From NCBI RefSeq assembly GCF_011386835.1, contig NC_088801.1:49228001-49292000 (forward strand): a DNA stretch of 64,000 nt, read 5' to 3'. The position numbers and the translations under genes were made by a program. Below, one piece after another: positions 2,645 through 63,357 of this stretch. The notes under the pieces were generated by a model. It did not search any database. It saw nothing but the letters and a program-made list of their open reading frames with translations, and was not told the DNA's origin. Origin of the DNA: Chrysemys picta bellii. Lineage: Eukaryota. Positions within the stretch are counted from its first letter, which is position 1. Each line of letters starts with the position of its first letter.

Positions 2645-3373
2645 AAGCAACAGAGGGTCCTGTGGCACCTTTAAGACTAACAGAAGTATTGGGAGTATAA
2701 GCTTTCGTGGGTAAGAACCTCACTTCTTCAGATGCAAGTAATGGAAATTTCCAGAGGCAGGTATAAATCAGTATGGAGATAACGAGGTCAGTTCAATCAG
2801 GGAGGGTGAGGTGCTCTGCTAGCAGTTGAGGTGTGAACACCAAGGGAGGAGAAACTGCTTCTGTAGTTGGATAGCCATTCACAGTCTTTGTTTAATCCTG
2901 ATCTGATAGTGTCAAATTTGCAAATGAACTGGAGCTCAGTAGTTTCTCTTTGGAGTCTGGTCCTGAAGTTTTTTTGCTGTAAGATGGCTACCTTTACATC
3001 TGCTATTGTGTGGCCAGGGAGGTTGAAGTGTTCTACAGGTTTTTGTATATTGCCATTCCTGATATCGGACTTGTGTCCATTTATCCTTTTGAGTAGTGAC
3101 TGTCCAGTTTGGCCAATGTACATAGCAGAGGGGCATTGCTGGCACATGATGGCATATATAACATTGGTGGACGTGCAGGTGAATGAGCCGGTGATGTTGT
3201 AGCTGATCTGGTTAGGTCCTGTGATGGTGTTGCTGGTGTAGATATGTGGGCAGAGTTGGCATCGAGGTTTGTTGCATGGGTTGGTTCCTGAGTTAGAGTT
3301 GTTATGGTGCGATGCGTGGTTACTGGTGAGAATATGCTTAAGGTTGGCGGGTTGTCTGTGGGCGAGGACTGGG
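2645..3373 (-). mobile_element. Penelope-like element, 5'-truncated, encoding a GIY-YIG endonuclease C-terminal region plus pseudo-LTR
   Basis: Minus ORF contains CNKPRCQLCPHI and VIYAIMCQQCPSAMYIGQTGQSLLKRINGH...HFNLPGH...GLNKD (GIY-YIG with Cys/His motif). Flanked by 7-bp direct repeat ctgtcta (2638-2644 / 3374-3380). Confidence 0.9.
2695..2735 (-). ncRNA. Minimal type-I hammerhead ribozyme motif in Penelope-like pseudo-LTR
   Basis: Minus strand reads GCAT-CTGAAGA-A-GTGAG..CCCAC-GAAA-GCTT-ATAC: intact CUGAnGA/GAAA core, palindromic AGCT stem III, one mismatch each in stems I and II. Confidence 0.6.
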
Positions 3374-3921
3374 CTGTCTAGGTACTTATACATTGTGATC
3401 AGGTTTCCTTTTAAAGTCTCTTTTTGATAAACTAAAAAGATTGAGTTCCCTACGTTTTTCAATGTAAGGCATGTTAGCCAGTCCAATTCATTCCTGTGAC
3501 ACATCTTTGTACTCTTCCTAAATTTTCAACATCCTGTCTTCAATGTGAATACCAGAACTAGATACAGTATTCCAGAAGTGGACTCACCAGTACAGTATAG
3601 ATAAAGTATAATAACCTCCTTGTTCCTATTTGATATTTCCTTGCCCTATCGCCACAACATCACACTGGGAGCTTCTGTTCAGTTGGTTATCCAAAATGAA
3701 TCCTAAGCACTTGTCTGAGTCACTGCTTTCCGGGATATAGTCCCCTATCTTGTAAGTTTGGTCTTGCATTTGGCCATATTGAAACACATAATGTTAGATT
3801 GTGCCCAGCTAACCAAGCAATGCAGATCACTTCCTACCAGGGGCCTCTCTTTGTGAGTATTTTTCACCTGCTCAACCTTTTCTCATCTGCAAACTTTATC
3901 AGCAATGATTTACTTCCTATT

Positions 3922-4640: not shown

Positions 4641-6531
4641 ATGAATAGTTCAAAAACTCACTATTTTGCGTAGTTCTATCATCCATCTTTGGTCCGCTAA
4701 AATATTAATCCTGCAAAAATGGAAAAGTCAATCCTCACAAATATTGATGCCCAGCTTGTTGATATGGCTGACCTCACAGCTAAGTACCAGCTGGCATCCT
4801 GCAGAAAAGGAATGCCTGAAAAATTCAAAGCAATTGGAGCTGACCTTTTAGTGGTCTGTGATTAACATGGACCCTGAGGATAGATATGCCGCTTGCCCTA
4901 CCCTCCCTTTATACTAACCCTCTTTATTTACTTTGTGGATTATGGTGAATCTGGTATTTTGGTATATGTCTTGTATTTGGAAAAATTAATAAAAATTATA
5001 AGGAAAAAACCCTTTACTCTTTCATACATAAACTTAAACTTTAGCAGCCAAGAAGTTATCACTTCCCACCCAGCAGTTAGGTAAACACTCCTCCAGTAAC
5101 TCTAATAAATACCTAGCAGGTAACTTCTGCTGCATTGTTTGGATTAAATAACAATACAAGTACATCTCTTTTATTCACTCTTCATGCACCCCTCCTCCAA
5201 TATTGCCTAAGTACATATTTAATAATCATGTCTCTCCATCCTATAGCAGTCTGCGTTTGAGATTTACCCATTCTGAAATGAGTATCTTCAGCAACTAATT
5301 TTCTGTGACAATTACATTAGATGGATCGGATCAGCCTGCAAGCTCCATGTGGCTGCTAGCTATTTTTCAGCTTTTTTTCTGTTGACTAGCAGCCATTTTT
5401 ATTAGTTTGATGTAATTCCCCGAAACAAAACACTTATCTTAAAATGGTAAAACATGAGTAAAGGCTTACACATGAAAATGAAAATATTCAGCCAACCAGA
5501 ATGCTGCTGTGAGGTCGTCATCCTCATCTGCTGCTCCAGTCATTGCACTGTCTTCCTTGAGTCCCTTTAGTAGCTACTCTTGCTTTGTCCACACCTCTGC
5601 TCATGCTTACATCTTTGTTACCATTTTATCTCACTCCCCCGCTCTATCAGCCCATGACTCCAACCTAACTGATTTCTTTGAACTCCTTTGAACCCTTTCG
5701 TAAGAGTGGGCATTCAGGGCTTCCCATTACATATGTGACTAATTTAAAATTGTTGTTTGTTTTTAGCAATAGACAACCTTAATTCTGGCATTTCCTTACT
5801 TTTGTGTGCTTGCCTTTGCAACCTTAATAAAGTTGATTTAACATAGGTATTTGGGTGTATTTTTGTCTAACTTGAGGATGGAAGTATAATGTTTACTTTC
5901 TATTTATTACATTATCTTAACCAAACTTAAGCCACTAAATAATTACCTAAATCTTTGAGCTTTCAGCCTTTTATGAACAAATTGTTTAGGGTTGAAAAAT
6001 AAACCAAGTCCCCAATCCTAAAATGTACATTAGGTGAGCTATTTTTGAAGTGAGTGTGGCTCTGATGTGTTGGAAATTGCAGGATCGGGGCCAAAGTTTG
6101 TTAATGTTTAGCACCACTAATTGTATTGAGGAAAAAGGTTGTGTTAGAACTAGGCTTAACAGGATAGAAACAAGGTACAAGCTCAGTGCAACACAATGCC
6201 TAAAAGGCTCTCAAAAATTGTTTTATCTTGGTTGTATCAGTAGAGAGAGGCCAAGGACAGTGGTGATAACTAAGAGTTCTGTGTACAGGACGCCAATAAT
6301 ATCAAATTTCAAATTTAGTTTTCACTATGTCTGCTACTTTTAACTTTCTGCAACTATTTCCTTAGAGTTCAAAGGCTCCTAATTATGCTCCAGATAATAT
6401 ACTCTAGAGTACATATTATTGTGTAACATGAAAATAAAGTTCATCTTTGACATTTCCTTGAAAAGTTTTTTTATGTGATGTGCTATCCTGGAGGGGTCTT
6501 CATGAAATTTTAAACTCTTTTGCCCTTACAG

Positions 6532-6630
6532 ATAATCAGAAAAAGTCTCCTGAGATCTACACAGCTCATGTAGAGGGACGTGGAGCTACAGCTATGAAAA
6601 TTAAATGGCCAAAGAAATCAAAACAACCAG
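6532..6630 (+). CDS. Candidate upstream coding exon of the HYR-module gene: (D)NQKKSPEIYTAHVEGRGATAMKIKWPKKSKQP
   Basis: Strong acceptor ctcttttgcccttacag|, donor CAG|gtaata, 99 nt, open in phase 1-1 like all downstream exons. Splicing to 15259 restores the canonical HYR Asp (G+AT). No homology evidence. Confidence 0.55.
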
Positions 6631-8473
6631 GTAATATTTCCTTTTGACTGAACAACTTTACTTAAAAAGTGATAGACATTGGACAAAAGCAGACTATTTT
6701 TTTTTAATCCACAAACTTTATGGTCCAGATCATCATCTGGTGTAAATTGGTTGACTTCAAAGGAGCTACACAGATCTAAACCAGCTGTGAAGCTGGTGAT
6801 GATTCAGATAAATTAGATCCTGGATCCTAAACACTTCTGATTGTAGTTTTGCAAAATCAAATTCCAATCAATGAGGTTTGGCACTCTGATGTAAAACCCA
6901 GCCTCATCCCCCCTCATCCAGTAAATGAATCAACTTAAAAGCATTTTTGTTTCAAACTTTTTTTTTTTCTTCCTGGGAGTTTGGAGTACATATTTTGGGT
7001 TAGTTGTGGTTGAACATCAGGACTAACATGGAGATTGTAAAATCCAGGCTTAAGCCTATACTTGTGCTTGGACAGTTTGATTCATTTAAAAAAAATGCTT
7101 TTCAGTTTGCATCCTAAATACCTTGAGTTGGAATGCATGATGTGAAAATGAAGTTCTGTTGATTTACATAAAATATTATGAAATAATTTTAAATAATAAA
7201 ATAATTGTCATTGTCATGCAAATAAATATAAGATAATAAGAGAGGGGTTTTTAAAAGGGCCTAAATGATTTAGGAACACAAGTTCCACTGACTTTCAACT
7301 TCCTCAATGTCATTGAGATATGTGCTTTTAAATACCTTAGGCACTTTTGAAAATCTTCCCCAGGTGGCAACAACAACAATCCAACTGCAATTGAAGTCAA
7401 GACATATAGTGAAGCTCAAATTTAGGGTAAATGTGATAAGCTTTGTGAAAGTTTTTTAAATTTATTTACACAGGGTAAGAGGATGCCTCAGTTTTCTGTA
7501 CAGTGGGATTGTTTATTTTGGTATCTAGAATAATTGATATTAGTTCTTGTAGATTTAAATATTAAAATCTAGTCACCTCTGAAATTGATCTGTCCATGTT
7601 TATTGCTGTGTTATACAATGGGAAGGTTACTGTATTATTTCAGCTGGGAGATAACTCTCCTGACCCTTCTCATGTTCCTCTTCTGAACTGCAACACATAC
7701 ATGCATATATACTTGGGATCAATCTTGTATTGTTCTGGGGCTTGTGGGTGAAAAGTGAATAGCACACAGAGACCCTTCATCATGCGCAGGATCCTTCCAC
7801 GTGCACGATATGTGCTAGCTAGATGTACTCGACTAACATCATTCTATACACAACATACCCAAAAGCAGAATGGTGTGCAGGTGAGTAACATGTCCAGTCT
7901 CCCAAGTCTATAAATCTTAATCATGAGGATGTTGCATAGGATGTCTGTAGAAAAGAAATGTTTGAGTCTTAATTGTGTGTTTTAACCAGTGCCACACTGG
8001 TGATCGCTGGTAACTGGTGGATCACCATGTTGTTTCTGCTCATATGAGAGGCAAAGTGTTCCCCGTAGCTCACAACGTGTTGGCTCTTTGTCTGCAGTCT
8101 AGAAAAATGACAAAAATCTTACTTAACACTGCTGATAACTTGGAGCTGTGATATTAATCAAAATCACTTCAAAGGCAACCATGTCTTTATTTAATAGACA
8201 TAGTGACATAGCTATGAAGCATGTTTTTTTTAAGTGATAAAATACGCGAATAGCCTTTGTATTCATATGGGATATTTACAATACGGTCACTGCAAATGTA
8301 AAATACATAATATCCAAGTTTATTTCATATGATTTTATCATTCAAATTAACCCAGGACCTCATTAACAACTAGGGTCATGTGAATTGGTTCAGTTGCCTC
8401 AGAAGTCACAATCACGTCTCAGCAGGAGCTGAACATAAGGCACTGTTGCCTACCCTGGCCATTTTATTATAAG

Positions 8474-15258: not shown

Positions 15259-15495
15259 ATACGATTCCTCCAACCATAACAAATTGCCCATGGGACATTA
15301 CCATAACCACCAAGACTGATCCAGTACAGGTCAGCTGGGAACAACCTGAAATTAGCGACAACAGTGGGGTGTTTACCTCAGTAGCTTCAATATCCAGTGG
15401 CTCCTGTTTCCGGTATGGAACTCATCAAGTGCAATACACCGCCCATGATGAAGCAGGAAATGAAGCCTCCTGCCAGTTTAAAGTTACCATCCAAA
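15259..15495 (+). CDS. HYR-module gene, exon HYR1: (D)TIPPTITNCPWDITITTKTDPVQVSWEQPEISDNSGVFTSVASISSGSCFRYGTHQVQYTAHDEAGNEASCQFKVTIQ
   Basis: Classic HYR signature D..PP.I..CP...V.W..P...DNSG...F..G...V.YTA.D.AGN.A.C.F.V. Acceptor ctccacag|, donor A|gtaagt, 237 nt, phase 1-1. Confidence 0.92.
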
Positions 15496-16039
15496 GTAAG
15501 TGCTATTATTGACTGAAGTTTAAGAAAGAAAAACAATCAGGATCCTGAAAACTGTTATGAACCAGATTTACGAATTTGAAGTAGAGCTGTTTGCTTTAAT
15601 GCTACCTCTTTGGCAGTAATATTTCCTGTAAACAGTTGGATGTTCACCAAACCATGAATATTTTGCTGTTCATATCAAGTCCTATATACCAAGTGCTATG
15701 ATTATATTAGGTGTAATAAAAATTGTATCTTTCAAGTACGTTTTGTGGCCAGTGGGCCAGATCCTCCACTGGCCTCAATTGGTAGGACTTCATTAACACC
15801 AGGAAACAGTCGTGGCAACTGTGGAGTAACTGTTGGAAAATCTTTTTAATGACAACCACTATTTGCCTGAGATGTGAGCTAGAGTTAAGAAGTAGTCAGC
15901 CAAGCACTGAAATATTCAGAAAGCCCTTGTTGTCTGACACTGATTCCCTGCAGTACTGATTTCCGAAAACGGTGCTTTCCAAAATGAAGTTAAAATTGGT
16001 AACACTCTTCCTGCTATTTCTCTATACTCATTAATAATC

Positions 16040-16290
16040 CCTTGTCTACACACACCAACTGTACTAATTTTAGCTGAACTGTTTTAGAAACTGATGTACT
16101 TAAGTCAGTGCAGTCACCATTGTGTGCACAATCTTAAATTAGTTTGAGTGCTTTACATTGATTTAAGCTAAATTAATATAAGGCTTTCTCAACTGATTTA
16201 AGATTGTCCCCACAAGGGGGTTGCACCCCCTTTACTATATCAGTTTCTAATGATTTAGTTAAATTAGCACAATTTTTATGTGTAGAAAAG
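16040..16290. mobile_element. Palindromic MITE with gtctacac/gtgtaga termini (possibly PIF/Harbinger-derived)
   Basis: ccttgtctacac...gtgtagaaaag termini with internal dyad symmetry. The family assignment is a guess. Confidence 0.45.
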
Positions 16291-19200
16291 TCCTGGCATT
16301 TGAAAGATCCGGATGAAGATCAATGGCAAATGGATATACCAATTCTTTAGTCAGTAGGGTTTGGATTTAAAAAAAAAAATAATTAGGACTTCTCTGAAAT
16401 TAGCCAGGTTGTTTCTTTAGGTCTCATTTTAATTAAACTGCTCTATTTTAAGCAGAAAGATTTTTTGCTAGCATTGATTAACATTTTTAAATGAAAAGGA
16501 AAATGCAAGTGATACTTGAGTTAAGCCACAGTGCTGACAACTTGATTACTAGAGGTGGAAGAAAGAAGAAATAGAAAATTACTTTTCTTATTTGGGATCT
16601 CCTAGAAGCCATAATATAACAGCAAGCTTCATCAACGTGGTGGGAGAAAGCATTAAAGACATTTACTGAATATCTGTGTTTTGTAATTATGTGAACAGTT
16701 TTACTGTACAAAACCCCACAATCATGTGTGTCATTTCTGCTGTGTCTACATTAAGGAATTCTTGTAAAAACTTCCTCACTAGAGACCAAATGCAGAACAG
16801 GTTTTGACAGGCTTAATTAAGGGCATCAAATACTAGCAATTGCTGGAACCTCATGGCTGGTGCTGGCACCAATGAGGGTTCTATTGTTAAATCTCCTAGT
16901 GTGGACACATATTACTGGTGTGTATTGTATAGTGCTATTATTCCTTTGCCATATTTTTAATATAAAAATAACATTCATATAAGAGCACTCCCTTTTCCTA
17001 AATAATCCATACCTGATCTTTTCTTTCCCTTTTTTCCTTTTCACTATGGGATCTTCCCCATCTTCCATATAGCTACAGCTTGTACAGTATGTGTAGAATT
17101 TGATGAGACAGTTAAATACCCATGTCATTACAGAATGCTATACTTACCCCACAAATCGCAGTAGGTGATGGATGCAAAAAATACACTAACTTTTGTAGGA
17201 TTTAGTTTTCACAAGAAAACTGAAGCAGTTTAAATTATGGTCTAATACTATACTCAATAGTGATTTACTTAAAACTGGTGCAAAAGACTGTGTGGACATT
17301 CTTATTTCACGTTACACTATGTTTATTTTGGATTATCTTAAATTGATTAGGAATTTGGTTTAAGCTAAATTGAAATAAGCCACTTTTAAACTGAAATAAG
17401 AGTCTCTACACAGGGGTTTGCACTGTTTTAACTAAATGGATTTATAAACCAATCTAAGTTGAACTAGAGCAACTTTGTTGTGTAGACAAGGCCTAAATTA
17501 GGGAAGGTGGAACAAATTCCATTAAATAAGAATGACCATTTTTAAGTTTTAAAAAGTTTTCATGTCCCTGCTCATTTGGCTTCAGGCAAATGCAGAAGTG
17601 CTGAAAATTCATGGGAGAGGCTAGTTTCATGCTATTTATACATGTCCTCTTTACAATCAGGTTTTAAATACCGCAGGCCTAGTCCTCCTCCCCACCCTTG
17701 GTATTTTAAGTACTTAATGCTTTCAGCTAAAGTGCAAAGCAATGTTAAAAAGAAGAAAACTGAATTTTCTTCAAACCTCAGAGAGACAAGGTGGATGAGG
17801 TAATATTTTTTATTGGGCCAACTTCTGTTGGTGAAAAACTCAGAAAAAGGCTCAAGTTTGGTTTGGGTAAATTTCAGATGAAGGTTGTGTTTTGTTTAAA
17901 TTTTATTTGAACCAGTTCACAATTTCTACCAGCATTATTCCCCTGCAAAATCTGGCATCGTTCTGTGCACATACATGACAGCTGTCTAGTGGAAAGTGTG
18001 GCATTAGTGCATTTATAAAGGTGTTTGTTTAGCTACCTGTTGCAAATAGCAACTGCAAGAACTAAAGCTGTAACTGTGCTGAAGTTGGGCAGGATCCCAG
18101 TTCTTTTTGGGGGGGAGGGGGAGGAATAAAATGAAAAGCAAAGGTTCAAGATATTGTTGATGAGATAACTAACAATTGTGTTTACGTGTTTTTATTTTCC
18201 CACAAATTGTTATTTCAAAACAGAAGAATACATTTATGACTTTTTAGTTGGACTCTGTTCTGCTATTTAGAAGAGAGCTAATTACACATATTGTTGTACC
18301 ATGATAACACCACACCAGCTCTATCCAGCCAACCAGCCTAGATTATTCAAGATGTCATATTTATTTATTTAAAAAAAACCTTTGGCTGTTTATCAGGAAG
18401 TGACTTCAATGAGGAAGCACAGTAATTCAATTATCAAACACTCCTCTCGATCAACTAAATACACATGAGCTGAATGTAAGAAAAAATATTTATTTACAAT
18501 TACTCATCTTGTATAGGTCATTATGGTGACATGGGGCCTGATCATCCTCTCTTGTAAACAGGGAGGCGGCTTTGTAGGGATTGTAGAGGGAAATGGAAAA
18601 TTCCATGAACATCTATAAAGTGATCAGTCCATTGTGTGGGACAAGCCGTGGTTCTGCTCCCAGGGCTATCAGCTGGGAAGAGCTGTGCCTCCATATAGTC
18701 TTGGGCCCTTTGCCCCTTCTGCTCCTGGGAAGCATGGGTCAGATGGAGACAAACTATCAGGGAGTCCTCAGGTTACTTTGGAGGGGATCAGCTATATGGA
18801 AAGAAAATGGAAGAGAAGGAAGGTGAGGGAGACAGGTCAGGGGAGAAGAGGGTAAGGATGGGCAGGTGTGGAGTGAAATTGAAGTGAAAAGACTTGGGAG
18901 AGGGAAGAGGCGAGGGAGGGATTGGAGCACAGGGCCAAGAAAGACAGAACTTTGTACACATTTGATTGAAATGGCCAATTGTGGAAAAGATCCCTGCTTT
19001 GGCTGCTTCTGGTCCAACTGGCTGGAATCTCTGGCTGGCTCCTGGTGCCCCCAGAGTGTATGGGATCCCTTCTGCATACTTTTGGCTGGGTGGAATGGTG
19101 CCCTGGCTGGCATATACTCCCACCCCACCAGTGCAGCAATCCCTGCTTTGGCTGCTACTGACTGGAGTCTCTGGCTGGCTTCTCTCTGTGGTTTTCCCCA

Positions 19201-19384
19201 AGGCCACAGGTCTGGGCAGAGGGAGACACCACGTGGATCCTAGTGACCCCAGAGAAGGAGATAGGGAGGAGGCTTCCTCTACACTGTTCTGGGTCCTGTG
19301 GTCAAGTTGTAATAGATACTCTAGAATTTTTTGAATAATAAGAACATGTCACATTTGTAGAATAATTTATATTCAAAGATATCA

Positions 19385-19505
19385 AAGTGCTTTACAAAGA
19401 TGGGTAGGTGTCATTATGCCCATTTTACAGAAGTTTAAAGTAAGGAAACCTATGACAGAGTCAGGAACAGCTGCGTGCCTGCCTGGTCTTTAACCACCAG
19501 ACTAT
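19385..19505 (-). mobile_element. MIR/CORE-SINE remnant
   Basis: aaagtgctttacaaa...attatgcccattttacaga...tttaaccaccagact resembles the reverse MIR core. Confidence 0.5.
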
Positions 19506-20146
19506 ATTTTTAGGTCTAACTTTGCAATCAAGGTCAGTACTCTCTGTCTCAGTGTAACGGTTTGTTGTTTAGTGATGTTTCAGATATGTATGTGTGCATA
19601 GTGCAGAGCTATTTATAAAGTACTGTGGGATGTGAAAGATGCTGAAAACATGTTTTATTTTATTTAGAAGAAGAATGCAACTGGTAGGTTAGTGTTAGTG
19701 CAGATCGAAATTTGTCCGATTTTATATATCACAGAGTAAATATTACTATTTTTCCTCTCTGCCCTAGCTGGCATATATAACCATGATTCCTTTCTTTCAG
19801 CACATACTCCAACCATGAAACATTCTTAGGGGAATGGTTCCTCAGGAATGTGTAAGCCAGAGCAAACATTGTGCTCTGGAAGGCAGCATCCTCTTCTTGT
19901 GTCACTGTAAACAAGAGGGATTGAAATACCATAGTTGACTAAAAGGTTGTGCACCATATATTAACTAAAATTCATGGAGCAAAAGTGTTCAAGCTATATA
20001 GCATGCATTTATCGCTTTAAGATTATTTTTTTTTATATGGGGGAGGGACTCCCTGGAGAAGGGGTAAACAGACCCAGATCTGCCTATTTCAATATCAAGT
20101 GGTGTTAATTAAATACTTTAGTGGACATACACTTAAGTGGGGACAA

Positions 20147-20360
20147 GTATCAGAGGGGTAGCCGTGTTAGTCTGAATTTGTAAAAAGCAACAGAGGGTCC
20201 TGTGGCACCTTTAAGACTAACAGAAATATTGGGAGCATAAGCTTGGGTGGGTAAGAACCTCACTTCTTGCATCTGAAGAAGTGAGGTTCTTACCCACCAA
20301 AGCTTATGCTCCCAATACTTCTGTTAGTCTTAAAGGTGCCACAGGACCCTCTGTTGCTTG
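20147..20360. mobile_element. Short hairpin Penelope-like derivative
   Basis: Starts gtatcagaggggtagccgtgttagtctg. 84-bp inverted arms (20185-20268 / 20276-20359, 82/84 identical) around a 7-nt loop. 14-bp TSD ttaagtggggacaa (20133-20146 / 20361-20374). Confidence 0.9.
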
Positions 20361-21660
20361 TTAAGTGGGGACAATATACATTGTCTCTCCTGATAGGGAG
20401 TTGACAGTATCCATTGTCTCAAAGACAGTAACTCCTTTGAAATGCAAGAATTTAGAGTGAGAGATTGCTTTGAAGTTTCATTAGCTCCCTTTTGCTTAAG
20501 CCCCAGATGGCAGACCTAACAGTTTTGATTGACACCTGTATTGTGACTGCATGTAGTGATTCTGCATTACAGTCACATGGTCATCGCAAAGGCTATAGTG
20601 TGTCTGAATAGAGTTAAAAACATCTTCCCATAGACATTTGGGAGATGGCTGAAGAGCAGTAATGGAGAAAGTGACTGGTCAGAGAGTGACATTGAACTTA
20701 GAGGAGTTTGCTGGAGATAGAAAGGGCCATGTTACACATGTGAATTAGAGAGCTAGCCCCTCAAATCAGTTTAGCTTCATTATTTATGCCAGTTTACTCC
20801 GGCTGAGGATTTTGCCCATCAGCTGTATTTTGCTTTTGTCATCTAGTATCACTGTTCATGAGTATGCACAACTAAATGAGCCTACATAATATCCTGTCTG
20901 GGTCAAGTCATTGCTCTCCCACACAGGAAAACTAGATTCGCAGCTAATCAAATAATGGGGAACTAATTCTGCAAAAAAAATGCAATTTGTTTCCATTTTG
21001 TAGGATTCAAATCAGAGTTTTCTTTCTTTCTTTCTTTGAATTTTGATTTTAATAATTTTGAATTTGCATATTTTTTCCCTTCTCCGCCGCCCCATTTTTT
21101 GGCTATTGAATGCTATAAAAAATGATGCCCCAGGATTCTTCCACTGTTACATTTTTTTTCTTTTTTCTTTTGCTACATTGAACCCTTTTCCAACTTTGGA
21201 AAAATTACAAAATGACAAAAGAAAAATGAAAAAGTAAAGTAAAAGCAAACATATCCCAGACATAATTCATTCTGCTGCACACAGTGGAACAAACAAGAAA
21301 ACTGAATATCTGACATTTTAAATTTCTTAATTTTAATATTTTCAGTTTCATTTCCAGTATAACTTGAAAAAAAAAAAAGGAGACGACTCCTTGAAGGTGC
21401 TTGGTTTTGAAAAATGGAAAAGTTTGATTAAAAAAAAAAAAGGTTTGAACATACAATTTCAGAGAGTTCTAGAAATAACCAACTCTGAGCATCTCAGGTG
21501 TCCTAATGACTTTGAAATGGTATCATTCAGTAAAGAACTTAACGGTTAAAAAAAAAATTGCAAGCATGTGTGGCATCTTTGTGGGCAGTTTACTTACTGT
21601 GTTTCTACTACAGTGATATGAATGGACTTGATACTTTAATATTTTTTATATTACTCTTAG

Positions 21661-21906
21661 AGCCAGATCTTTCGTGCACTGCCCAACCTCCCACTGATGG
21701 GTCTTTGGCTTGTGGAATGTTATCTTATCCTGGCAGTGGAATGAACAAATGGCAGTTTTGTGTACCATTCTGCATGAAGAGCACTGGTTTCCATCGGAGA
21801 GCATGGTCAGTGTTTTTCTGCCAGTCTTCTCAGTCTGGGACAAGTTGGTTTCATTTGGATGAAGCCTGGCAAATGACAAAGGCTCACATGCCAGAGACTT
21901 GCACAG
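21661..21906 (+). CDS. HYR-module gene, 6-Cys sushi/CCP-like exon 1: (K)PDLSCTAQPPTDGSLACGMLSYPGSGMNKWQFCVPFCMKSTGFHRRAWSVFFCQSSQSGTSWFHLDEAWQMTKAHMPETCT
   Basis: Acceptor atattactcttag|, donor ACAG|gtgagc, 246 nt, phase 1-1. Pattern C..PP.DG.L.C...C...C...F......F.C...W...P..C resembles the module that follows HYR in SVEP1-type proteins. Confidence 0.85.
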
Positions 21907-23911
21907 GTGAGCAGGCTTGAAAATTTCAGTGGATTAGCTTTCTTAAAGACTCTTGCTGACTGAAAGTTTATTGATTTACACGTTCAGCTGCTATTAGAGT
22001 TTAAGTCATGTTTGTATAAGACAACAGGAAGATATGGATTCCAATTATGATATGAATTGAGAAAAGAATGTTTTGTTTCTCCATCTTCAACTAGAGTGTG
22101 TTGGTTCTCAGGGCAACATTCTGATGTTACAGAGGAGTGCAGTGGAGTAACAGTGGTATAAGTCTAGACTAACTAAGAGCAGAAGTTGACCTGAGAATTT
22201 ATCCACTTTGCTTCTCCTGCAAAGTCTGATCATTATTAAGTGTGTGTGTCTGCATATTGGATTTTCTTTCTTTTTTGACAGCCTTCCTAAGAGGCTTGAA
22301 AATAAACTCTCTCACTACACATTTTGCCTGTTTCCTTTTAGCAAATCTTTACTTCTCCTTCCCTCCCCATGTTTCTAATAACACAAGCCATTATGGTTTA
22401 GTATTGCTTATTACCATGATTATTCACTAGCATCATGTATAGTTTCAGGAGTTGAACAGTCAAAAATAGTGTGTGTAGGTCCTACAAAATATAGTTATTT
22501 TTGTTGGTTATGGAGAACAGGTATTCTAGAATTTGAAGGCAATTTCTCAGCATATTAATATTTTTAAGGTAGGACAACTGTCTGGCTAATACTAAATTAT
22601 TGAATAAAGATCCTTTAACTCTTGACTTAGAGGTCTTCCAAAATACTTCCTGAGACTTGCAAGCCTAATGCTATTCTCTCACCTCCCAATCACTACAGAA
22701 GGAAGAAGTACCCCAGTGCTTGTCTATGCTTGGAAATTTACCAAAATAGCCATTCTGGAATAATTATTTAAAATTTTAATTTATAATTCCTAAATGGATT
22801 AAGTTAAATCAGGAAAGGGCAGTTTTATTCCAGAATAAGAGTGTTCACTTGTGGAGTTGTACTGAAATAGCTATTTTGGTAAATTTCCCAGTGTCGACAA
22901 GCCCTTACTGATAAGTACTCTACTATCCATTTTTATTGGATACTTTTCAAATAGAAATTGAAAGAGAAACATAATTTCTTAACCAGATCCAAGAAGGACT
23001 CCAAGGAGGCACGAGAACCACATATTTAAGGAAACAGGGCCAGATGGAATAGCACCATAGAGTGCTGACTGCATTAGCTTCTGCAAAGGATGCAGCTCAG
23101 TCCCATACCGTCTCTGCTCTAACTGGAAAAATTTCAGGAAATAAACTTTCCAAGGGTGGTGTCATAACTACTTAACCTGGGTTCTCCAGCGGACCTGCCT
23201 GAGGCACAATGCATTCTGGAACTCTTGCTTGACTGGTGCAGCTCCCAGGAGAGGCTTTCGTGGCTTTGGGGATCAAACTGAAGTATCTCGTTGGGGATTG
23301 GCGACATCACAGGCAGTTAATCTAATCTGCAGATGGATTAATTTTGAATATCAAAACATAGTTTTATCAATTGAATGGGGCGTATAGATGGAGACAGGAT
23401 CTAACAGAGGTATCCCCAGTCATCTGTCTATGGTAAGCAATTGCAGATGACACAGAAAGCATGGCCAGTTCCTTTCTGAAAGCTCTAACCAAAGTGTGTA
23501 GCAAGATCTTTTTTTGCATAGAGCAAACACTGAAAGTTTGTGATGTGTTACAGAAGTGGCAGTGTGTCACTCAGGTTGTAAATTTGTTACTGTCAGGTTG
23601 TATGTGATAAACTGAAAACATGACAAATAGCTAATTTTTTATTTGAGCTAGAGTCTTACACATGAAACCAAAATGACATTTTTACCCCTCATTCAAGTAT
23701 TGAGCTGTATATTTATGCTTTTGATATATCCCTCATGCTGCTTTGTGTTGTGGCCTTGTGTTCAAGAGAAAAATTGGTAATGTGATACATTTGTGCTTGC
23801 CAGGACTCTAACTCTCTATTATATGAAAACTGTTTAGCACTTTTGTGCATCTTGGCACCATTTTGGGCATATCCTTATTAACTAACCTCATGTTATATGA
23901 ACTATTAACAG

Positions 23912-24130
23912 TCAGGCGTCGAACAGGGTCCAGAAAAGGAGATTCACTACAGTACTATGAGGGTGACTGCAATGAACAGGCCGTGAAAAAACACATCCTA
24001 GCAACTGTGGAACACATTGTAGCCAAAGATCCCTCTGTTGTTTCTCAGTGCACCAGGCACCCAAACACCTGTGGCAATTTCAGAATTTCAGATCTTTCTG
24101 TTCACTGTGGGCCTGGAAACAACCAAAGAG
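23912..24130 (+). CDS. HYR-module gene, 4-Cys module exon 1: (V)RRRTGSRKGDSLQYYEGDCNEQAVKKHILATVEHIVAKDPSVVSQCTRHPNTCGNFRISDLSVHCGPGNNQR
   Basis: Donor GAG|gtaaca; acceptor tattaacag| (an alternative in-phase AG lies 15 nt downstream). 219 nt, phase 1-1. Aligns by eye with exon 30744-30955. Confidence 0.8.
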
Positions 24131-25011
24131 GTAACAAATTGTCTTTTCAGAACATTGTTAATGTCACTGTGATGGGGTGGACAGTATTTTTTCTCCTACA
24201 TGTTTTTTAATATGCTCCATAGTGTCTTCTCTCCCTCTGTGATAATTCATATTATGAAGTCATTTGCAATCAGCCGCAGCATAACATAATCTTAAAGGCA
24301 TACATATTTCATGCTCTAATTTATCAGTAATGTGCACCATTAGCTCCCATCATTCTTGATGGGAGCTGGACATGCTTTTCTAGTTGCTTTGAACTACATC
24401 TCCTTAAGTCATCAAAATCATATATTTTAAAATATAACAGATGTATTGTAATGTACAACACACAGTACAGCTATAACAGATGTATTGTAATGTACTCAAC
24501 ATGGGCTTTCAGAAAGTACTTCAGGTAAGCATGAGTTTACAGAAGTATGTAATGTGTCAAACAAAGTCCAATGCATCTCACAGAAGCTATGTGGAAATTA
24601 TGAAGGATAGACAGCTGTAAGATCAGCTTGTCAACTTTTACTTGAATCCAAAATGTATTAGCTGAAATATATGATTCTACAGAGGTCCTCAGGAGTGGGA
24701 TGAATGAAAATGAGTACAGAATAAAGGTAGTCAAAGGGATCTGCCATACAAGTACTTCTGTAGGTGACGTTCATTTGGGAACATGATGGCAAGGAGCCTT
24801 TTCTCTCGTTTCGTGGGTTGGGTAGAAGCAAGGTGGACAAACATCAAAAAGTTCTTTGTTTCATTGTAATTCAACCTCTTTGCTCTGGACTTTTGCTGTT
24901 AATTTTTGGTGCTGTTCATTTTAGTTGCAGTTCAGAGTGAAACGCTGATAGGATAGACCCTCTCATGACGTTTTATTATTTGCTACTTGCAGCTGAAGCC
25001 AAAAACTAGGC

Positions 25012-26079
25012 TCTGACCAGGGTCCTGGGGGTAGGGGCCACACTGAGATTGTTCAATCAGGACAAACTGCAAAGAATGGGGCAGACGATCCCCCAAACTG
25101 GAGGTTATTTCTAAGAATTAGATTCAGCAAGCCAGCAACAAAACAGCTTCTACAATACCTTACTGGTTACCCAGAAGCCAAAAGCACAGTTCCCTTAAAA
25201 CAACACAGCCTTGGGCTCCTACCCAGACAGCCAAGTCAAATATGAGGAGGATTACTGAAAATCTTGTTCATCATATAAAAAGTTCTACCTATCCCAAAGG
25301 ATCAGACACATTACCCATGAGGTCACTGATTATTTCAGATGTTACCCAAATACACGCTTACAGCCAATTCTTATTAACTAAACTAAAATGTATTAAAAAA
25401 GAAAAGACAGTATTTGTTAAAAGGTCATTATACATACAGATATGAATAAAGTCCTTAGGTCAGTTTCATTGTAGAGATGGTGAGCTTCAGAGTTGCAAAA
25501 GGTTCTTTCAGAATCAGTTCCGTAGATCACAGTCCAATGTCCAATATCAGGGTGACCCAGGCTGGATCTGGGGATCTCAGTCTTGTGACTCAAACTTCCC
25601 CTGATGAAGCTTAAACAGATCTGACATGCAGGATCAAGGCCCAAGAGTTCTTTTTATAAATCCCTGGCAGGCTATTGTCAGCCTCTTGACAGCAGGTGAT
25701 CCTTGGGTGAAGAATAGTGGCTTTGAAGTAACCTCCTATTTCCTAAGCATCACCGGTAATTAGCTATAGGGATTAGCATAAGGCAACTGCCCATCTCCCA
25801 CCATTTACAGGTAGTATACTACATACTTCAAAGAGAAATGAAGACAATGTTATTACTACACTCACAGTTCATCTAAATGTTAGCATCTCCTTTTGATCTC
25901 TGAATTGACAGAATACAGCGACATACAGGAACCGTTTGGTTACATTGTCAACCTCTAACAATATATATGTAAACACACAAAAAACCACAACTATTATCTA
26001 CTAATATGTCTCTGAAGGTTGAATCTGGGTCAATTAGCCTGCTAGTTGTGTAATTGTTTCTGTGTTACCCTGTGTCACA
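25012..26079. mobile_element. Solo LTR (Gypsy/ERV-type) in the intron between the two protein units
   Basis: 1068 bp, begins tctgacc (degenerate TG) and ends tgtgtcaca. Exact 5-bp TSD taggc (25007-25011 / 26080-26084). No internal coding sequence. Confidence 0.75.
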
Positions 26080-27481
26080 TAGGCCTAGCAAATTTATTTA
26101 ACAATATATATATATATATATTGGACCTTTAAAAAAGATCACATTTAGTTCACCTTCAAATCTGGGGAAAAGTTTTGGGGCTACTGTTTTTGGCTCTCTC
26201 TGCTTTTAAATGTTCAATTCTTTCAAGATTACTGAATTTGCTTCTTTATACTGCCATACAGTATCCTGTCTTTTTGCTATGCTTAATGTCTGTGCCAAAA
26301 ATCTGGTTTTTTTTTGTATTTGTATTCTTTTGTTGCTATGTTTCCATTTTTGCTTTAAATGATTTTTTTTTATTTCCCTGTAAGATTCCTGATTCAACTT
26401 TGTACTTCATTAAAGATTTCACATATTTCAAATAGAACCCATTTTAATTAGCTTTTTAATTACAGCTGCAGCAAGCTGTTTACTAGAGATTCTTAGTCTA
26501 GTGAACAAGCCCCTGTGGAGCTATTTAGCCTTGGAGAAAAGTGAAAAAGAGCCATTTTTAAATCAGAATGGAAATATTTTGCACACATCACACAATCGTA
26601 CGGGAATTTTCTGAAATTCCAGTTTAAAGGATCCCCATTATAAAAGAACTGTGCCCCAGAACATGGGGATACAGATTCTGTGGGAAGGCCAAGAGCAGTG
26701 TGGTGACTTGGCTAAATTCCAGTTGAGTAAGTGTATTCTATTCAACCCAAATTCTCCTGTAGTTGCAATTGGCTGAGACAATTTTCACATTCACATTCTG
26801 ATTGGGCAGCAATTTACACCACGTTGCACTCCCTTTGCACAGGTACATGTTACATAAGGTGCCAAAGGCAGTGCAGAACCAGGCCCTTTCCTGAGTCTGT
26901 GCTACACAATGGGGCATAGATGTCACTTTTCAAAGGTGGGTGAGGCATTTGTGTCCTAAAAGTATCCTGATATAAGTCTAACTTCTTTTATTTGTTAAGC
27001 TTTAAGAGCCATACTTTCAAAGATATTAAAGTGCTGATCTGCAGGCCCCTAAATACCTTTGAACATCAAGCCCTAAGTCCTGGTGAAATTCTCCTCTCAG
27101 TTACACCCAGTGTGAAGCCCAATGACTTAAGTAAAGTTTAACTGGTGTAACTGAGAGACGAATTTAGCCCATTGTAAGTAAAATCAACACTGTTTGTTGA
27201 GAACTAATTATGGGCCCAGTCCTGGCACTACTGCTAAGCCTTGGCAAATCTCCCATTGACTTCCCTGGGATCCAGATCTGGTCCAAATGTCTTAAATACT
27301 ATACAATGGCACATATGCATTTGCATAAAGCGTATTGCAGTTCTGTTCACTTAAGAAACATGCAGTTAAATAACCTTAGATCTGAGCAGCAGGGTTGTCT
27401 CATTGCATCTGATTGTGAAACATAGACTATCAATATTACTTTCTTATGCTTCTTAGCATTTGGAATAGCCAAAGTCTGATA

Positions 27482-27529
27482 TCTATTATTATGTATATTG
27501 TTCTTTCTATTATTATGTATATTGTTCTT
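27482..27529 (+). repeat. Perfect 24-bp tandem duplication in the HYR2 splice acceptor
   Basis: tctattattatgtatattgttctt x2, ending 7 nt before the exon start. Confidence 0.95.
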
Positions 27530-27536
27530 TCCTCAG

Positions 27537-27803
27537 ATACTGAACCACCTGTAGTGATCTCCTGTCCTCAGAACATTGAGATAGAAACCAAAAAAGGAAA
27601 CCTCTACTGGAATGACTTGCCTGAATTCTCTTGGAAGGAGCCTGTGTTTGAAGACAACTCCAGGGGTCCACTGACAATCACAAAAGGAGGGTCCAATGTT
27701 AATAATGGAGACAAACTGGCATATGGCCAATATTCAGTGGAATATATAGCAACAGATCTTTCAGGAAACCAAGCCAAATGTTCCTTTGAGATCTCTGTGA
27801 AAT
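27537..27803 (+). CDS. HYR-module gene, exon HYR2: (D)TEPPVVISCPQNIEIETKKGNLYWNDLPEFSWKEPVFEDNSRGPLTITKGGSNVNNGDKLAYGQYSVEYIATDLSGNQAKCSFEISVK
   Basis: HYR signature (DTEPP...CP, W.EP.F.DNS, Y.ATD.SGN.A.C.F). Acceptor ttctttcctcag|, donor T|gtatgt, 267 nt, phase 1-1. Confidence 0.92.
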
Positions 27804-28507
27804 GTATGTGTTTGGCTTATACTCAAGGTCACTGTTGGAATATAATGAAGTATTAATGCTAATTGTCCTGTGGCATTTGTTGTTTGATGATTAATACCAT
27901 GTGGGGGTAGGATATAAACTCTCACATTTTGTCTACATCTACAGGCCATTTATATGCAAGGGTGAAAACATGTATCCCCAAATGTCCCCTCTTCCCCCCC
28001 CAGCTCTTACAGCTTTGCTCTCTGTCCTCATATAGCACAGTATCTTTTCACTGAAGCCTATGTGTCAGCTCTGTGTAAAGAATTGCTTCCTTCAATGGCT
28101 CCAGGTACAGATCCTAACACAAGTTATAGGATTCAAACAAACCTGTTACAATGAAATATGAGCCTGAGATGCAAAGTTTGACTCCAGATTGGAAGTTGGG
28201 GCAGAGACAAGGCTTGAGGGGAAAGATCTGATATTCTGATTCAGGCTCCTCTCTGTTAAAAGAAATCATCTCCTGTAACCAGCATGTTTTCAGAAGTGGT
28301 CACTCACTCACTTTTTGTGCCACAGTTGTGTGGGGTATCCCACTTGAGACACCTGGTGCCTGATTTTCAGGGCTACTAAGAACCCACTTTCCACAGGGCA
28401 CCCCAGGAGTGAGTCACACCAATTCACTGAACGCTTCTGAAAATTGTAGCTGTGTTCCTCCTGATGATTCCCTGTTCTGTTCATTCCCTCTGGGGCACCT
28501 GGCATTG

Positions 28508-28585
28508 GCCACTGTTGGAAGACAGGATACTGGGCTAAATGGACCTTTGGTCTGACCCAGTAGGGCCGTTCTTATGTTCTTATGT
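28508..28585 (+). mobile_element. CR1 extreme 3' end
   Basis: gacaggatactgggctaaatggacctttggtctgacccagtagggccgttcttatgttcttatgt, ending in TTCTTATG repeats. Confidence 0.8.
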
Positions 28586-28914
28586 CCCAAATACTATCTC
28601 CAGCTATAATGCTATAATAAATTGCTGAAGACTATCTGAGTCTTACGCCCATCCAAGGGTTCAATCCCAAACTTTTCCTATGTTACACAAATAGGCACAT
28701 AAGAATCAGTTTCCCTTTACATGCAGTAGGAGGCTATTCACATCATCCTGAAGATTTACTCAACAGTGACATTATTATCATGTATATGAATTTATAGTAA
28801 TATTTTAAGAATTTCTGTCTAAGATTTTGCGTAATTTGCTTTTTACTAAATGTAAGCAGTATCACTCATTATTAACTCAGTTTTTATTGTTGTCTTTTTT
28901 ATGTATACACAAAG

Positions 28915-29151
28915 CAATTGCATGCACAATGGAATTGCCGGAGCATGGAGCTATAGTCTGTGGCTATCCTTCGATGGACGGCATGGACCTCATGACCATT
29001 GACTGTATTGTACTATGTCAAAGCAAATACCAGTTTAGCAGGGATCCATATCCAATATATGCATGCTCAGAGGAGGGACTTTGGTGGACCTTCACAAGCA
29101 CATTCACGCCTATTGGCCCAAATTTGCCAAGTTTAAACCATAAGTGCCAAG
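28915..29151 (+). CDS. HYR-module gene, 6-Cys sushi/CCP-like exon 2: (S)IACTMELPEHGAIVCGYPSMDGMDLMTIDCIVLCQSKYQFSRDPYPIYACSEEGLWWTFTSTFTPIGPNLPSLNHKCQ
   Basis: Acceptor ...tacacaaag|, donor AAG|gtaaga, 237 nt, phase 1-1. Same six-Cys pattern as 21661-21906. Confidence 0.87.
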
Positions 29152-29661
29152 GTAAGAAAGTTTAAATGAATGAAAAACTTTGTACCTAATTAAAAATTCT
29201 TATTTGCATGTTATATTTTCACCACTTTGATGAGCCTGATGGCATGTAAATTATATTTCAAGGATTCATTAAAAGTAATTTTCCTTTTTTCTATAAACAA
29301 CACTTGTCAGATTTCTCAAATCAGCACTGAATTAAACTGAGGTGGGTTGAGTTCAGCTGCTTGATTTACTTTATTACAGATTTAAAATCTGCTGAGGGAG
29401 TATAGATATTTCACATTAATTATGTTGATGAAGATCTGTGTTCTGATTACCAACCCTGAGTCTTTATACAGAAAATGGAGACATATCAATGAGATACCAT
29501 ACCACTCTCTAACCAGTGAGGGATTACAGGAATAAAGCACCATTGCTTTATTAACTGATGACTTTTCACAAGAACAAAACCTAAATTTATGGGCTTTGCA
29601 CAGGGATCTTTCTAGGGCTTGCATATTGGGCACAAGCAAACAATAAGCCTTTTAATGTGGC

Positions 29662-29897
29662 TAAATGTAAATGTATAAATTTATAAACAAAGAATGTAGG
29701 CCATACATACGGGATGGGGGACTGTTCATGGAAACATGACTCTTAAAAAGATTTGGGAGTCGTGGTGGATAATCACCTGAACGTGAGCTCTCAGTGCAAT
29801 GGTGTGGCCAAAAGGGTGAACGCGTAATGCTTGGATGCACGAACACAGGAATCTCGAGTAGGAGTAGAGTAGTAGTAGCGGTCCCTTGTATCCTTGG
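29662..29897 (+). mobile_element. CR1 RT internal fragment
   Basis: gatttgggagtcgtggtggataatcacctgaacgtgagctctcagtgcaatggtgtggccaaaaggg encodes the CR1 DLGV.VD..LN.S.QC...AK motif. Confidence 0.75.
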
Positions 29898-30743
29898 AAT
29901 ATATGAATCGATATACATTTTTAGGGTCTTTTGGGGGCAGAGTTGTGTCTATCTTTGTGTTTGGAGAATGCCTCACTCATTCTGAATGCTATCACAGTAT
30001 AAATAATTATAAGAACCCACTAGCCATCCATGTGGCTCATCTTTAGTTGCTTCTACAGTCCCAGGGTTACTGTAGTAACTATAGTCCATGCACTATCTTC
30101 ATAGTGGCTTCTAGGAGGTGGCTGCGTGAAGACTGTGGATGCATTGGTCATGACCATGCCCACTCCCCAGTTCTCTCCTGACTCATATTAGGCCAAGAGT
30201 GAGTGAACATGAAGCATTGTTCCAGCCAAGTCTGGAACAATTATCCAGCTACAGCTACAATTATCACCACTCTGTGATATACATTTTTTTTTCAGTCTCT
30301 ATCTTCAGCCTGCCATGCTCAAAATGCAGAAAATTGTTGGCATAATTTTGATTGCATTCTTTCCTATTCATTTTATTTATTTTGGCCCTGATCCTGCAAT
30401 AACTTATACATGTGCTTAATGATGAGCATGAGAGTAATCCCAGTGGGTCAATTCATATACTTCAGATTAAAAACACATTTGTAAATCTTTGCAGGGTCCT
30501 TTTCCTAGGGGTTCATTAAAAACCCACTAAAAGCAATGTGAGCCTTAGTTCTTACCTTTAACCTTACCAATTAATTCTTTTATGATATTTGTTGTATTAA
30601 AAGTTCCAGATATGTAAACATTAAAATCAAAACTATCCTCATAGCATTTGATACATGTAAGTTGAAAAGTAGGATGCTCTGCATCACTGAGGTGACTGGC
30701 TAGGTCAAAATTAATCCTGTGTTTTCTTTGCCTGTATCTTTAG

Positions 30744-30955
30744 AACCAGATATCCATAAAAAGCCAAAAGTTGTTGATCAGAATTTTTACTTTGATGGTG
30801 ACTGCCATGACAGAGCAGTGCAAGTCATGCTGATAGGACACTTGGAATATTTTCAGAGGAAAACTTCAGCATATCAGTACTGTGAATTAAACAGAGAGTT
30901 CTGCAGAAAGTGGAATGGTTACCGCAATGTAACGGTGTTCTGTGGAAGCACGTGA
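30744..30955 (+). CDS. HYR-module gene, 4-Cys module exon 2, probable terminal coding exon: (E)PDIHKKPKVVDQNFYFDGDCHDRAVQVMLIGHLEYFQRKTSAYQYCELNREFCRKWNGYRNVTVFCGST*
   Basis: Acceptor ttttctttgcctgtatctttag|, phase 1, TGA at 30953-30955. Motifs FY.DGDC, CX6C and V.V.CG are shared with 23912-24130. Confidence 0.85.
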
Positions 30956-31091: not shown

Positions 31092-31097
31092 AATAAA
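31092..31097 (+). terminator. Candidate poly(A) signal of the HYR-module gene
   Basis: First AATAAA after the stop (about 137 nt downstream). AATAAA is common in AT-rich DNA. Confidence 0.4.
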
Positions 31098-40844: not shown

Positions 40845-41066
40845 TCAACCATACAGCTTTTCAGCTTTTAAAACAATATTCTCCATGTCATGGTAGCTTT
40901 TTCCATTTAAATGTTCATTCGTGAAATCGTGATTGAAGCTGTAGCCCTGAACATCACTGATGGATGATACCGTGTAGGAAGCTGTGCGCATAGTATCTGA
41001 GTGAGTGAAGCTGTGGTCAAATTGCATTCTGTACTGATTCCAGTGCCTTCTCAAAACAGCTTGGAC
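40845..41066 (-). CDS. CALCRL: CALCRL terminal coding exon (helix 8 and C-tail): [73 protein letters not shown]
   Basis: Matches the recalled CALCRL (not CALCR) C-terminus (ASYTVS.ISD, EHLNGK). Acceptor gaatag|, phase 0, TGA at 40845-40847. Confidence 0.95.

Positions 41067-50518: not shown

Positions 50519-50845
<327 letters not shown>

Positions 50846-63138: not shown

Positions 63139-63357
<219 letters not shown>

Follow-up and report, generated by a model that had tools for sequence, protein, structure and literature searches.

A gene beside CALCRL in Chrysemys picta bellii encoding a probably secreted protein of duplicated HYR, sushi-like and 4-Cys modules related to SVEP1

The window considered here is the whole 64,000-nucleotide stretch of Chrysemys picta bellii contig NC_088801.1 (positions 49,228,001 to 49,292,000, forward strand; RefSeq assembly GCF_011386835.1) and it contains seven of the coding exons of a gene for a modular protein of extracellular type, followed on the opposite strand by exons of CALCRL. 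The original prediction had recognised six of the seven, between 15259 and 30955, and had spliced them into a stop-free frame of 472 codons in which a HYR domain, a six-cysteine (6-Cys) sushi-like module and a 4-Cys module occur twice in tandem, one module to an exon. Coordinates, lengths and splice sites were all found as described: AG stands directly before each of the six exons and GT directly after all but the last. The exons measure 237, 246, 219, 267, 237 and 212 nucleotides (nt), and all except the sixth are divisible by three in length and of phase 1-1. Read from its third base, the spliced sequence yields 471 residues and a stop with no internal stops, against 22 and 29 stops in the remaining two frames. 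The frame is therefore intact, but it is not the whole protein, since it represents the 3' four-fifths of the coding sequence and misses the 5' exons for a basic linker, a further sushi-like domain and a leader. The coding exons in the window are listed below.

6532..6630, plus strand: linker exon of 99 nt, phase 1-1, for the basic linker between the N-terminal sushi-like domain and the first HYR domain (HYR1); located by tblastn with turtle orthologues.
15259..15495, plus strand: exon of HYR domain 1; AG/GT, phase 1; Pfam HYR E 7e-20; 96.2% nucleotide identity to Caretta, ungapped.
21661..21906, plus strand: exon of 6-Cys sushi-like module 1 (S1); AG/GT; aligns with S2 and with the N-terminal sushi-like domain; no Pfam match.
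23912..24130, plus strand: exon of 4-Cys module 1 (C1); AG/GT; opens with KGD; spliced contigs join 24130 to 27537.
27537..27803, plus strand: exon of HYR domain 2 (HYR2); Pfam HYR E 1.7e-14; junctions on both sides in transcript contigs; 98.9% nucleotide identity to Caretta.
28915..29151, plus strand: exon of 6-Cys sushi-like module 2 (S2); the 27803/28915 joint is present in runs X2, X5 and X8.
30744..30955, plus strand: last coding exon, with 4-Cys module 2 (C2) and the stop; 100% identity to the C-terminus of XP_042716577.2.

The linker exon lies between AG at 6530-6531 and GT at 6631-6632 and its frame joins the exon at 15259 as ..KQP/DTIPP, whilst at the other end of the gene the last exon runs on into the 3' untranslated region, with AATAAA at 31092. 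The absence of a transmembrane segment from the spliced six-exon protein, claimed earlier, is borne out by a mean Kyte-Doolittle value that never rises above 0.87 over 19-residue windows, and C2 carries a conserved NVT glycosylation sequon. The N-terminal part of the protein is encoded far upstream: a 189-nt phase 1-1 exon for the additional 6-Cys sushi-like domain (G000:C11:49154256-49154444) lies approximately 74 kb before the window start, is free of stops and is 97-100% identical to its counterparts in other turtles, Caretta included. A few hundred bases further upstream are two short pieces of a hydrophobic leader (MLLFLTTLASVWLL.. and ..PSLLSPEQMPTS), at L006 850-898 and 1183-1221 (G000:C11 about 49153600-49153970). 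All nine coding pieces are open in the Chrysemys assembly, and every exon matches one place only in it, so that the gene is single-copy. Full-length orthologues have 589-605 residues in the order leader, sushi-like domain, basic linker (KIKRPKKSKQP type) and then the HYR, 6-Cys sushi-like and 4-Cys modules twice over; they have a hydrophobic N-terminus (19-residue Kyte-Doolittle mean, KD19, of 1.6-1.9) with no later hydrophobic stretch, and 30 cysteines are conserved in the mature part of the protein. The 80-kb intron also contains, at 2797-3504 of the window (minus strand), a separate open reading frame of 235 residues with a GIY-YIG nuclease domain (Pfam E 1.9e-5), which is probably the remnant of a Penelope-like retroelement.

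The six-exon protein is 100% identical over its 471 residues to residues 39-509 of XP_042716577.2, the RefSeq "uncharacterized protein LOC101944597 isoform X1" of Chrysemys picta bellii, and a second RefSeq entry, "hyalin-like isoform X3", skips the C1 exon in frame. The gene is already present, then, as a predicted RefSeq model, with an architecture of its own and no functional name. Database names for it are mainly "uncharacterized protein" or "hyalin-like", and two Acipenseriform entries carry the name SVEP1. The full-length orthologue of Platysternon megacephalum is labelled "solute carrier family 35 member F1", a mis-annotation, as it contains no SLC35F domain and the SLC35F exons are on contigs C1 and C3 rather than C11. 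Six LOC identifiers of the gene, from four lineages, do not occur in ~8.4 million full-text papers, no paper was found there on "HYR domain" together with CALCRL, and "hyalin-like" combined with taxon names returned only unrelated papers, none containing that term. The generic names and uncited identifiers agree with the earlier statement that the gene is functionally undescribed.

The modules differ in how readily they can be assigned to known families. A Pfam scan places HYR domains where they had been predicted, in the first and fourth of the six exons (71.6 and 54.3 bits, both over nearly the full model, with a gathering score of 21.7 bits), and the orthologues match Pfam HYR (PF02494) likewise; in exons 2, 3, 5 and 6 of the six the same scan found no family. 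The two-fold layout is apparent from the exons themselves, as exon 1 is 34% identical to exon 4 (E 2e-13) and exon 2 is 27% identical to exon 5 (E 2e-4), and exons 3 and 6 align with four of four cysteines conserved once orthologues are added. When the N-terminal domain, S1 and S2 are aligned, the six cysteines are conserved and five of their columns are invariant, the last cysteine being displaced in the alignment of the N-terminal domains, and a proline, a glycine and a tryptophan are invariant across the three copies and all species aligned. Such a pattern is in the manner of a sushi, or CCP, domain with one extra disulfide, the framework expected of a sushi domain being C..P..G close to the first cysteine, a tryptophan ahead of the last one, and some 60-80 residues within a single phase-1 exon. 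The Pfam Sushi threshold, however, is not reached. The N-terminal domain comes nearest to it: against a Pfam Sushi (PF00084) cut-off of 20.7 bits, three of the four species score 15.4-16.4 bits (E 0.013-0.025). The feature neighbours of S2 in the ESM Atlas include Sushi and Sushi_2 clusters at 0.87-0.88, which is below the level taken as reliable and serves as a lead only.

The 4-Cys module is more obscure. An ESM Atlas feature search with it gave no usable match, PDB profile searches with the sushi-like and 4-Cys alignments returned chance matches only (antibody light chains, designed helical proteins), and the module is predicted, with low confidence, to consist of helices followed by strands; no relative of it was found in Pfam, PDB or Atlas, and no fold could be recognised. 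The motif with which C1 opens is KGD in Chrysemys, RGD in Caretta and sturgeon, RGN in coelacanth and QGD in elephant shark, and because of the last two forms the R/KGD is only a weak possibility as an integrin site. When a profile of the sushi-like and 4-Cys pair was aligned by hhalign with a nine-sequence profile of the SVEP1 segment that follows the second HYR domain (residues ~723-861, from mammalian fragments), the result was a probability of 89.7% with an E value of 1.9e-6 over 109 columns, the alignment being colinear and spanning the sushi-like module and the start of the 4-Cys module, and its score being driven by the sushi-like part. The module order had been said to recall the central region of SVEP1, and the comparison upholds this. 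The homology of the unit to the post-HYR2 segment suggests that the gene is a compact, ancient paralogue of the SVEP1-type HYR/CCP group and not SVEP1 itself.

Evidence of splicing comes from Logan contigs of four public runs, presumed to be RNA, which were aligned to 23800-29700. In each of runs X5 (organism A) and X8 (organism D) a contig of ~1.3 kb passes from exon 3 to exon 4 with a skip of 3406 bases, GT..AG falling exactly at 24130/27537, and the contigs also confirm the predicted joint at 27803/28915. These spliced contigs come from at least three studies and two organisms. Upstream of exon 3 they carry another 816-818 letters; the three earlier exons of the window account for no more than 582 nt, and the contigs therefore most probably extend into the exons far upstream. 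Intron-less joints at canonical sites are as expected of cDNA, and the runs are on that ground read as evidence of expression. In the Acipenseriformes an intron-less contig of 1936 nt encodes an entire orthologue of 605 residues. Two intronic stretches, 28331-28724 and 25179-25572, are an abundant interspersed repeat, as is evident from many loose contig ends and from a summed depth that is very high in all four runs, reaching tens of thousands at 28.3-28.7 kb; the repeat there matched no Rfam family.

The locus of Caretta caretta aligns with that of Chrysemys exon for exon without gaps and with all splice sites kept. By the Nei-Gojobori method the two species differ by 22 synonymous changes in 298 sites and 22 non-synonymous changes in 1115 sites, giving a synonymous rate (dS) of 0.078, a non-synonymous rate (dN) of 0.020 and a dN/dS ratio of 0.26 for this single turtle pair (Fisher p 1.5e-5). 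Aligned mismatches amount to ~6-8% in introns and ~3% in exons, the intron figure being in agreement with dS. The gene is under purifying selection, as the original prediction had supposed, and the ratio comes from one pair among the turtles. Over longer distances the turtle protein is ~70% identical to the orthologues of coelacanth and of sturgeon (sterlet). Identity to these two varies between modules, from 80-84% for HYR2 and S2 to 57-63% for S1 and C1, and S2 (65-81% identical to fish orthologues) is among the most conserved. An elephant-shark fragment holds both repeats, which points to an internal duplication older than the gnathostome crown, one that would predate the split between cartilaginous and bony vertebrates.

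The taxon range was established by single-sequence and profile searches of 5.8 billion proteins. An exhaustive HMMER search with exon 2, against 1.84 billion cluster representatives, found two true clusters only, with coelacanth and elephant-shark representatives, and a full-length coelacanth query retrieved the turtle and sturgeon proteins. Orthologues are present in Chrysemys, Trachemys, two Mauremys species, Platysternon, Macrochelys and seven sea turtles including Dermochelys, and outside the turtles in three Acipenser species, Huso, Polyodon, Latimeria and Callorhinchus. The other matches were HYR-only (SVEP1-like and bacterial proteins). No mammal, bird, crocodilian, squamate, amphibian or teleost protein matched, which is an absence from predicted proteomes and not proof of loss. 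The suggestion of an old family kept in this reptile lineage is accordingly right as to age, the gene being shared by chimaera, coelacanth, sturgeon and turtles, but among reptiles it was found in turtles only and not in squamates, crocodilians or birds.

The sterlet locus likewise has one module per exon, within only 12.4 kb, and the next gene downstream there, on the opposite strand, is a class-B G-protein-coupled receptor. Its counterparts are found in the turtle window.

40848-41066, 50528-50722 and 63142-63309, minus strand: exons of CALCRL (CGRP type 1 receptor), counterparts of the class-B receptor exons of sterlet.

These minus-strand exons match human CALCRL with E values of 3e-25 to 8e-35, well ahead of the calcitonin receptor. 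The tail-to-tail placement of the two genes is kept from sturgeon to turtle, with ~10 kb between the stop codons of the HYR gene and CALCRL in the turtle. A GC-rich stretch at ~44.9-46.0 kb of the window falls within a CALCRL intron. At the Caretta locus a gene call of 605 residues for a reverse transcriptase (RVT_1; L009 44196-46013) lies ~4 kb downstream of the orthologue, before the expected CALCRL.

Taken together, the observations are best accounted for by a single-copy functional gene whose product is a secreted, disulfide-rich protein of ~590-600 residues, related to SVEP1 and composed of a signal peptide, a sushi-like domain, a linker and the HYR, sushi-like and 4-Cys modules twice over, one module per phase-1 exon; a probability of about 0.8 is given to this description as a whole. 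Its parts are not equally firm. That this is a real, functional gene is almost certain, and that its product is secreted is very probable, whilst for a role of matrix or adhesion type, as opposed to some other extracellular role, the chances are even and the case is one of analogy. The original prediction of an intact, probably secreted matrix or adhesion protein stands as far as the intact frame and the secreted type are concerned, the latter through the hydrophobic N-terminal signal of the orthologues, and we infer that the product is secreted in Chrysemys itself; the matrix or adhesion role keeps its conjectural standing. The protein would enter the secretory pathway and its 30 conserved cysteines would form ~15 disulfides. 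Outside the cell this beads-on-a-string protein may act, like SVEP1 and SRPX2, by means of contacts that its HYR and CCP-like modules make with other proteins, in a binding or adhesion role that could be matrix-associated or soluble; this is suggested by analogy with those two proteins and by the domain types, from which the ligand cannot be named. The second repeat would be the likeliest binding core because it is the better conserved.

A number of observations weigh against this description. The earlier label "sushi-like" for exons 2 and 5 is not confirmed by Pfam Sushi, which gave no match to S1- or S2-type modules from five species even at E 10. AlphaFold2 returned a mean predicted local distance difference test score (pLDDT) of 49.9 for the full-length Caretta orthologue (eight-sequence alignment), only the HYR domains being confident, and 39.0 for the S2 and C2 di-module (12 sequences, both repeats). 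The 4-Cys module alone compared with SVEP1 gave an E value of 0.39, which is not significant, though the same register was chosen. The evidence bearing on function is at the level of sequence, and it includes runs whose RNA nature is a presumption. At the 5' end of the Chrysemys gene, the models of other turtles place the donor of the first leader piece where the Chrysemys assembly has GG, and RefSeq isoforms X1 and X3 begin MNCE.. without a signal peptide. Finally, in runs X1 and X2, which belong to one study, the contig for exons 3 and 4 carries ~25-26 extra letters at 27537-27575. In part they duplicate the beginning of exon 4, and their presence would cause a frameshift; they may be an allele, a reverse-transcription artefact or an assembly artefact.

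Among the competing explanations, the one that survives best accepts secretion and disputes the role. The protein could be a soluble regulator or recognition factor, binding through its CCP-like domains in the manner of complement regulators or selectins, or else a protein of the egg coat or reproductive tract, dispensable and lost repeatedly across most lineages of vertebrates. In its favour, complement regulators and selectins typically have CCP-like domains that carry an extra disulfide, and the product is compact, of small size and without collagen, EGF or VWA modules; its patchy taxon range, moreover, implies many independent losses, as for a dispensable or lineage-specific physiology. 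Against this, the searches matched it to none of the complement, selectin or zona proteins, and the nearest detectable relative is SVEP1, a matrix protein. The explanation is judged unlikely. It is considerably less likely that the gene is decaying in Chrysemys picta only, as a unitary pseudogene in the making or with a product no longer secreted, whilst functional in other turtles. The isoforms without a signal peptide, the apparently non-canonical donor of the first leader piece and the frame-shifting letters at exon 4 in two of the runs would all fit such decay. However, a GT six bases downstream of the expected leader donor would keep phase 1, the junctions in X5 and X8 are clean, the extent of their contigs upstream of exon 3 suggests that far-upstream exons are transcribed, and the dN/dS of 0.26 includes the Chrysemys branch. 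With all nine coding pieces open and the N-terminal sushi-like exon stop-free and almost unchanged from Caretta, the pseudogene explanation is rejected. The weakest idea makes the exons a piece of SVEP1, either misassembled or alternatively spliced, in line with some sturgeon annotations; it can appeal to the two Acipenseriform entries so named and to the HYR domains, whose best matches outside the family are SVEP1-like proteins at 32% identity, but it is ruled out by a separate and genuine turtle SVEP1 locus of different exon structure on contig C6 (~117.97-117.99 Mb; 68-92% identity to an SVEP1 fragment, with each HYR split in two, compared with only 33% at the locus on C11), by the gene's own start, signal peptide and stop in several species, and by the finding of no VWA, ephrin-receptor-like, EGF or pentraxin domain or long CCP array by Pfam in the window exons or a full-length orthologue.

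If the preferred description of a functional, secreted SVEP1 relative is extended to its widest form, the gene would represent an ancient gnathostome family beside CALCRL, a SVEP1-derived secreted protein with a 4-Cys module that has been constrained for >400 million years in slowly evolving lineages (chimaera, coelacanth, sturgeon and paddlefish, turtles), has been lost independently in mammals, birds, crocodilians, squamates, amphibians and teleosts, and could be a ligand or co-factor in a persisting receptor system with an integrin or SVEP1-type partner. The whole of this is a speculative proposal and rather doubtful. Independently of that proposal, the taxon range offers a clear example of a gene that is old and well conserved and survives only where vertebrate evolution has been slow. 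With CALCRL as an anchor, the place to look in other vertebrates for the gene, or for what is left of it, is fixed, and each loss is directly testable. Practical value will be modest until the tissue and the binding partner are known.

The closest known system is SVEP1 (polydom), a gene of coronary disease and lymphangiogenesis. Its HYR2, "sushi 4" and Cys-rich stretch (~residues 645-861) follow one another in the same three-module order as in the turtle gene, and the Cys spacing of the last module is alike in both (C-x23/24-C-x6/7-C-x9/12-C). The two differ greatly in scale. SVEP1 runs to ~3,500 residues and includes VWA and ephrin-receptor-like domains, numerous CCP domains, EGF and pentraxin, all of them absent from the turtle gene, in which the triplet is tandemly duplicated and an additional sushi-like domain stands before it. 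The turtle gene shows this triplet of SVEP1 (HYR, sushi-like, Cys module) to be a portable unit, and one that could help to dissect the poorly understood N-terminal part of SVEP1.

A second comparison is with an unnamed protein known from transcript and metagenome contigs (P0042/P0010), which consists of three Sushi domains, two HYR domains, a sushi-like domain and a Cys module. The sushi-like and 4-Cys pair aligned with the end of this protein by hhalign at a probability of 96.7% (E 4e-10, 120 columns). It too is compact (534 residues) and secreted, and it ends, as the turtle gene does, in HYR, 6-Cys sushi-like and C-module. It differs in carrying canonical Pfam Sushi repeats and, ahead of a single sushi-like and Cys-module pair, two HYR domains side by side; its C-module keeps two of the four cysteines, and overall identity is 32% over one third of the protein. 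It is colinear with SVEP1-like proteins through the HYR pair and the next sushi-like domain (BLASTP E 1e-33).

Sea-urchin hyalin is a very large protein with long arrays of HYR repeats. The turtle gene shares the HYR domain with it but has just two, separated by other modules, and the RefSeq name "hyalin-like" reflects only the HYR domain match. SRPX and SRPX2, small secreted vertebrate proteins with sushi repeats and HYR (PMC2151080, PMC3091736), resemble the turtle gene product in being small, of secreted type and a combination of sushi or sushi-like domains with HYR. No SRPX protein was among the protein-database matches, and SRPX and SRPX2 differ from the turtle protein in having one HYR domain, canonical sushi repeats and a C-terminal DUF4174, or thioredoxin-like, domain; neither DUF4174 nor any other C-terminal Pfam family was found in the window exons or in the full-length orthologue P0001. 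With the turtle gene, the kinds of HYR protein in vertebrates, otherwise SVEP1, SRPX and SRPX2, rise to four.

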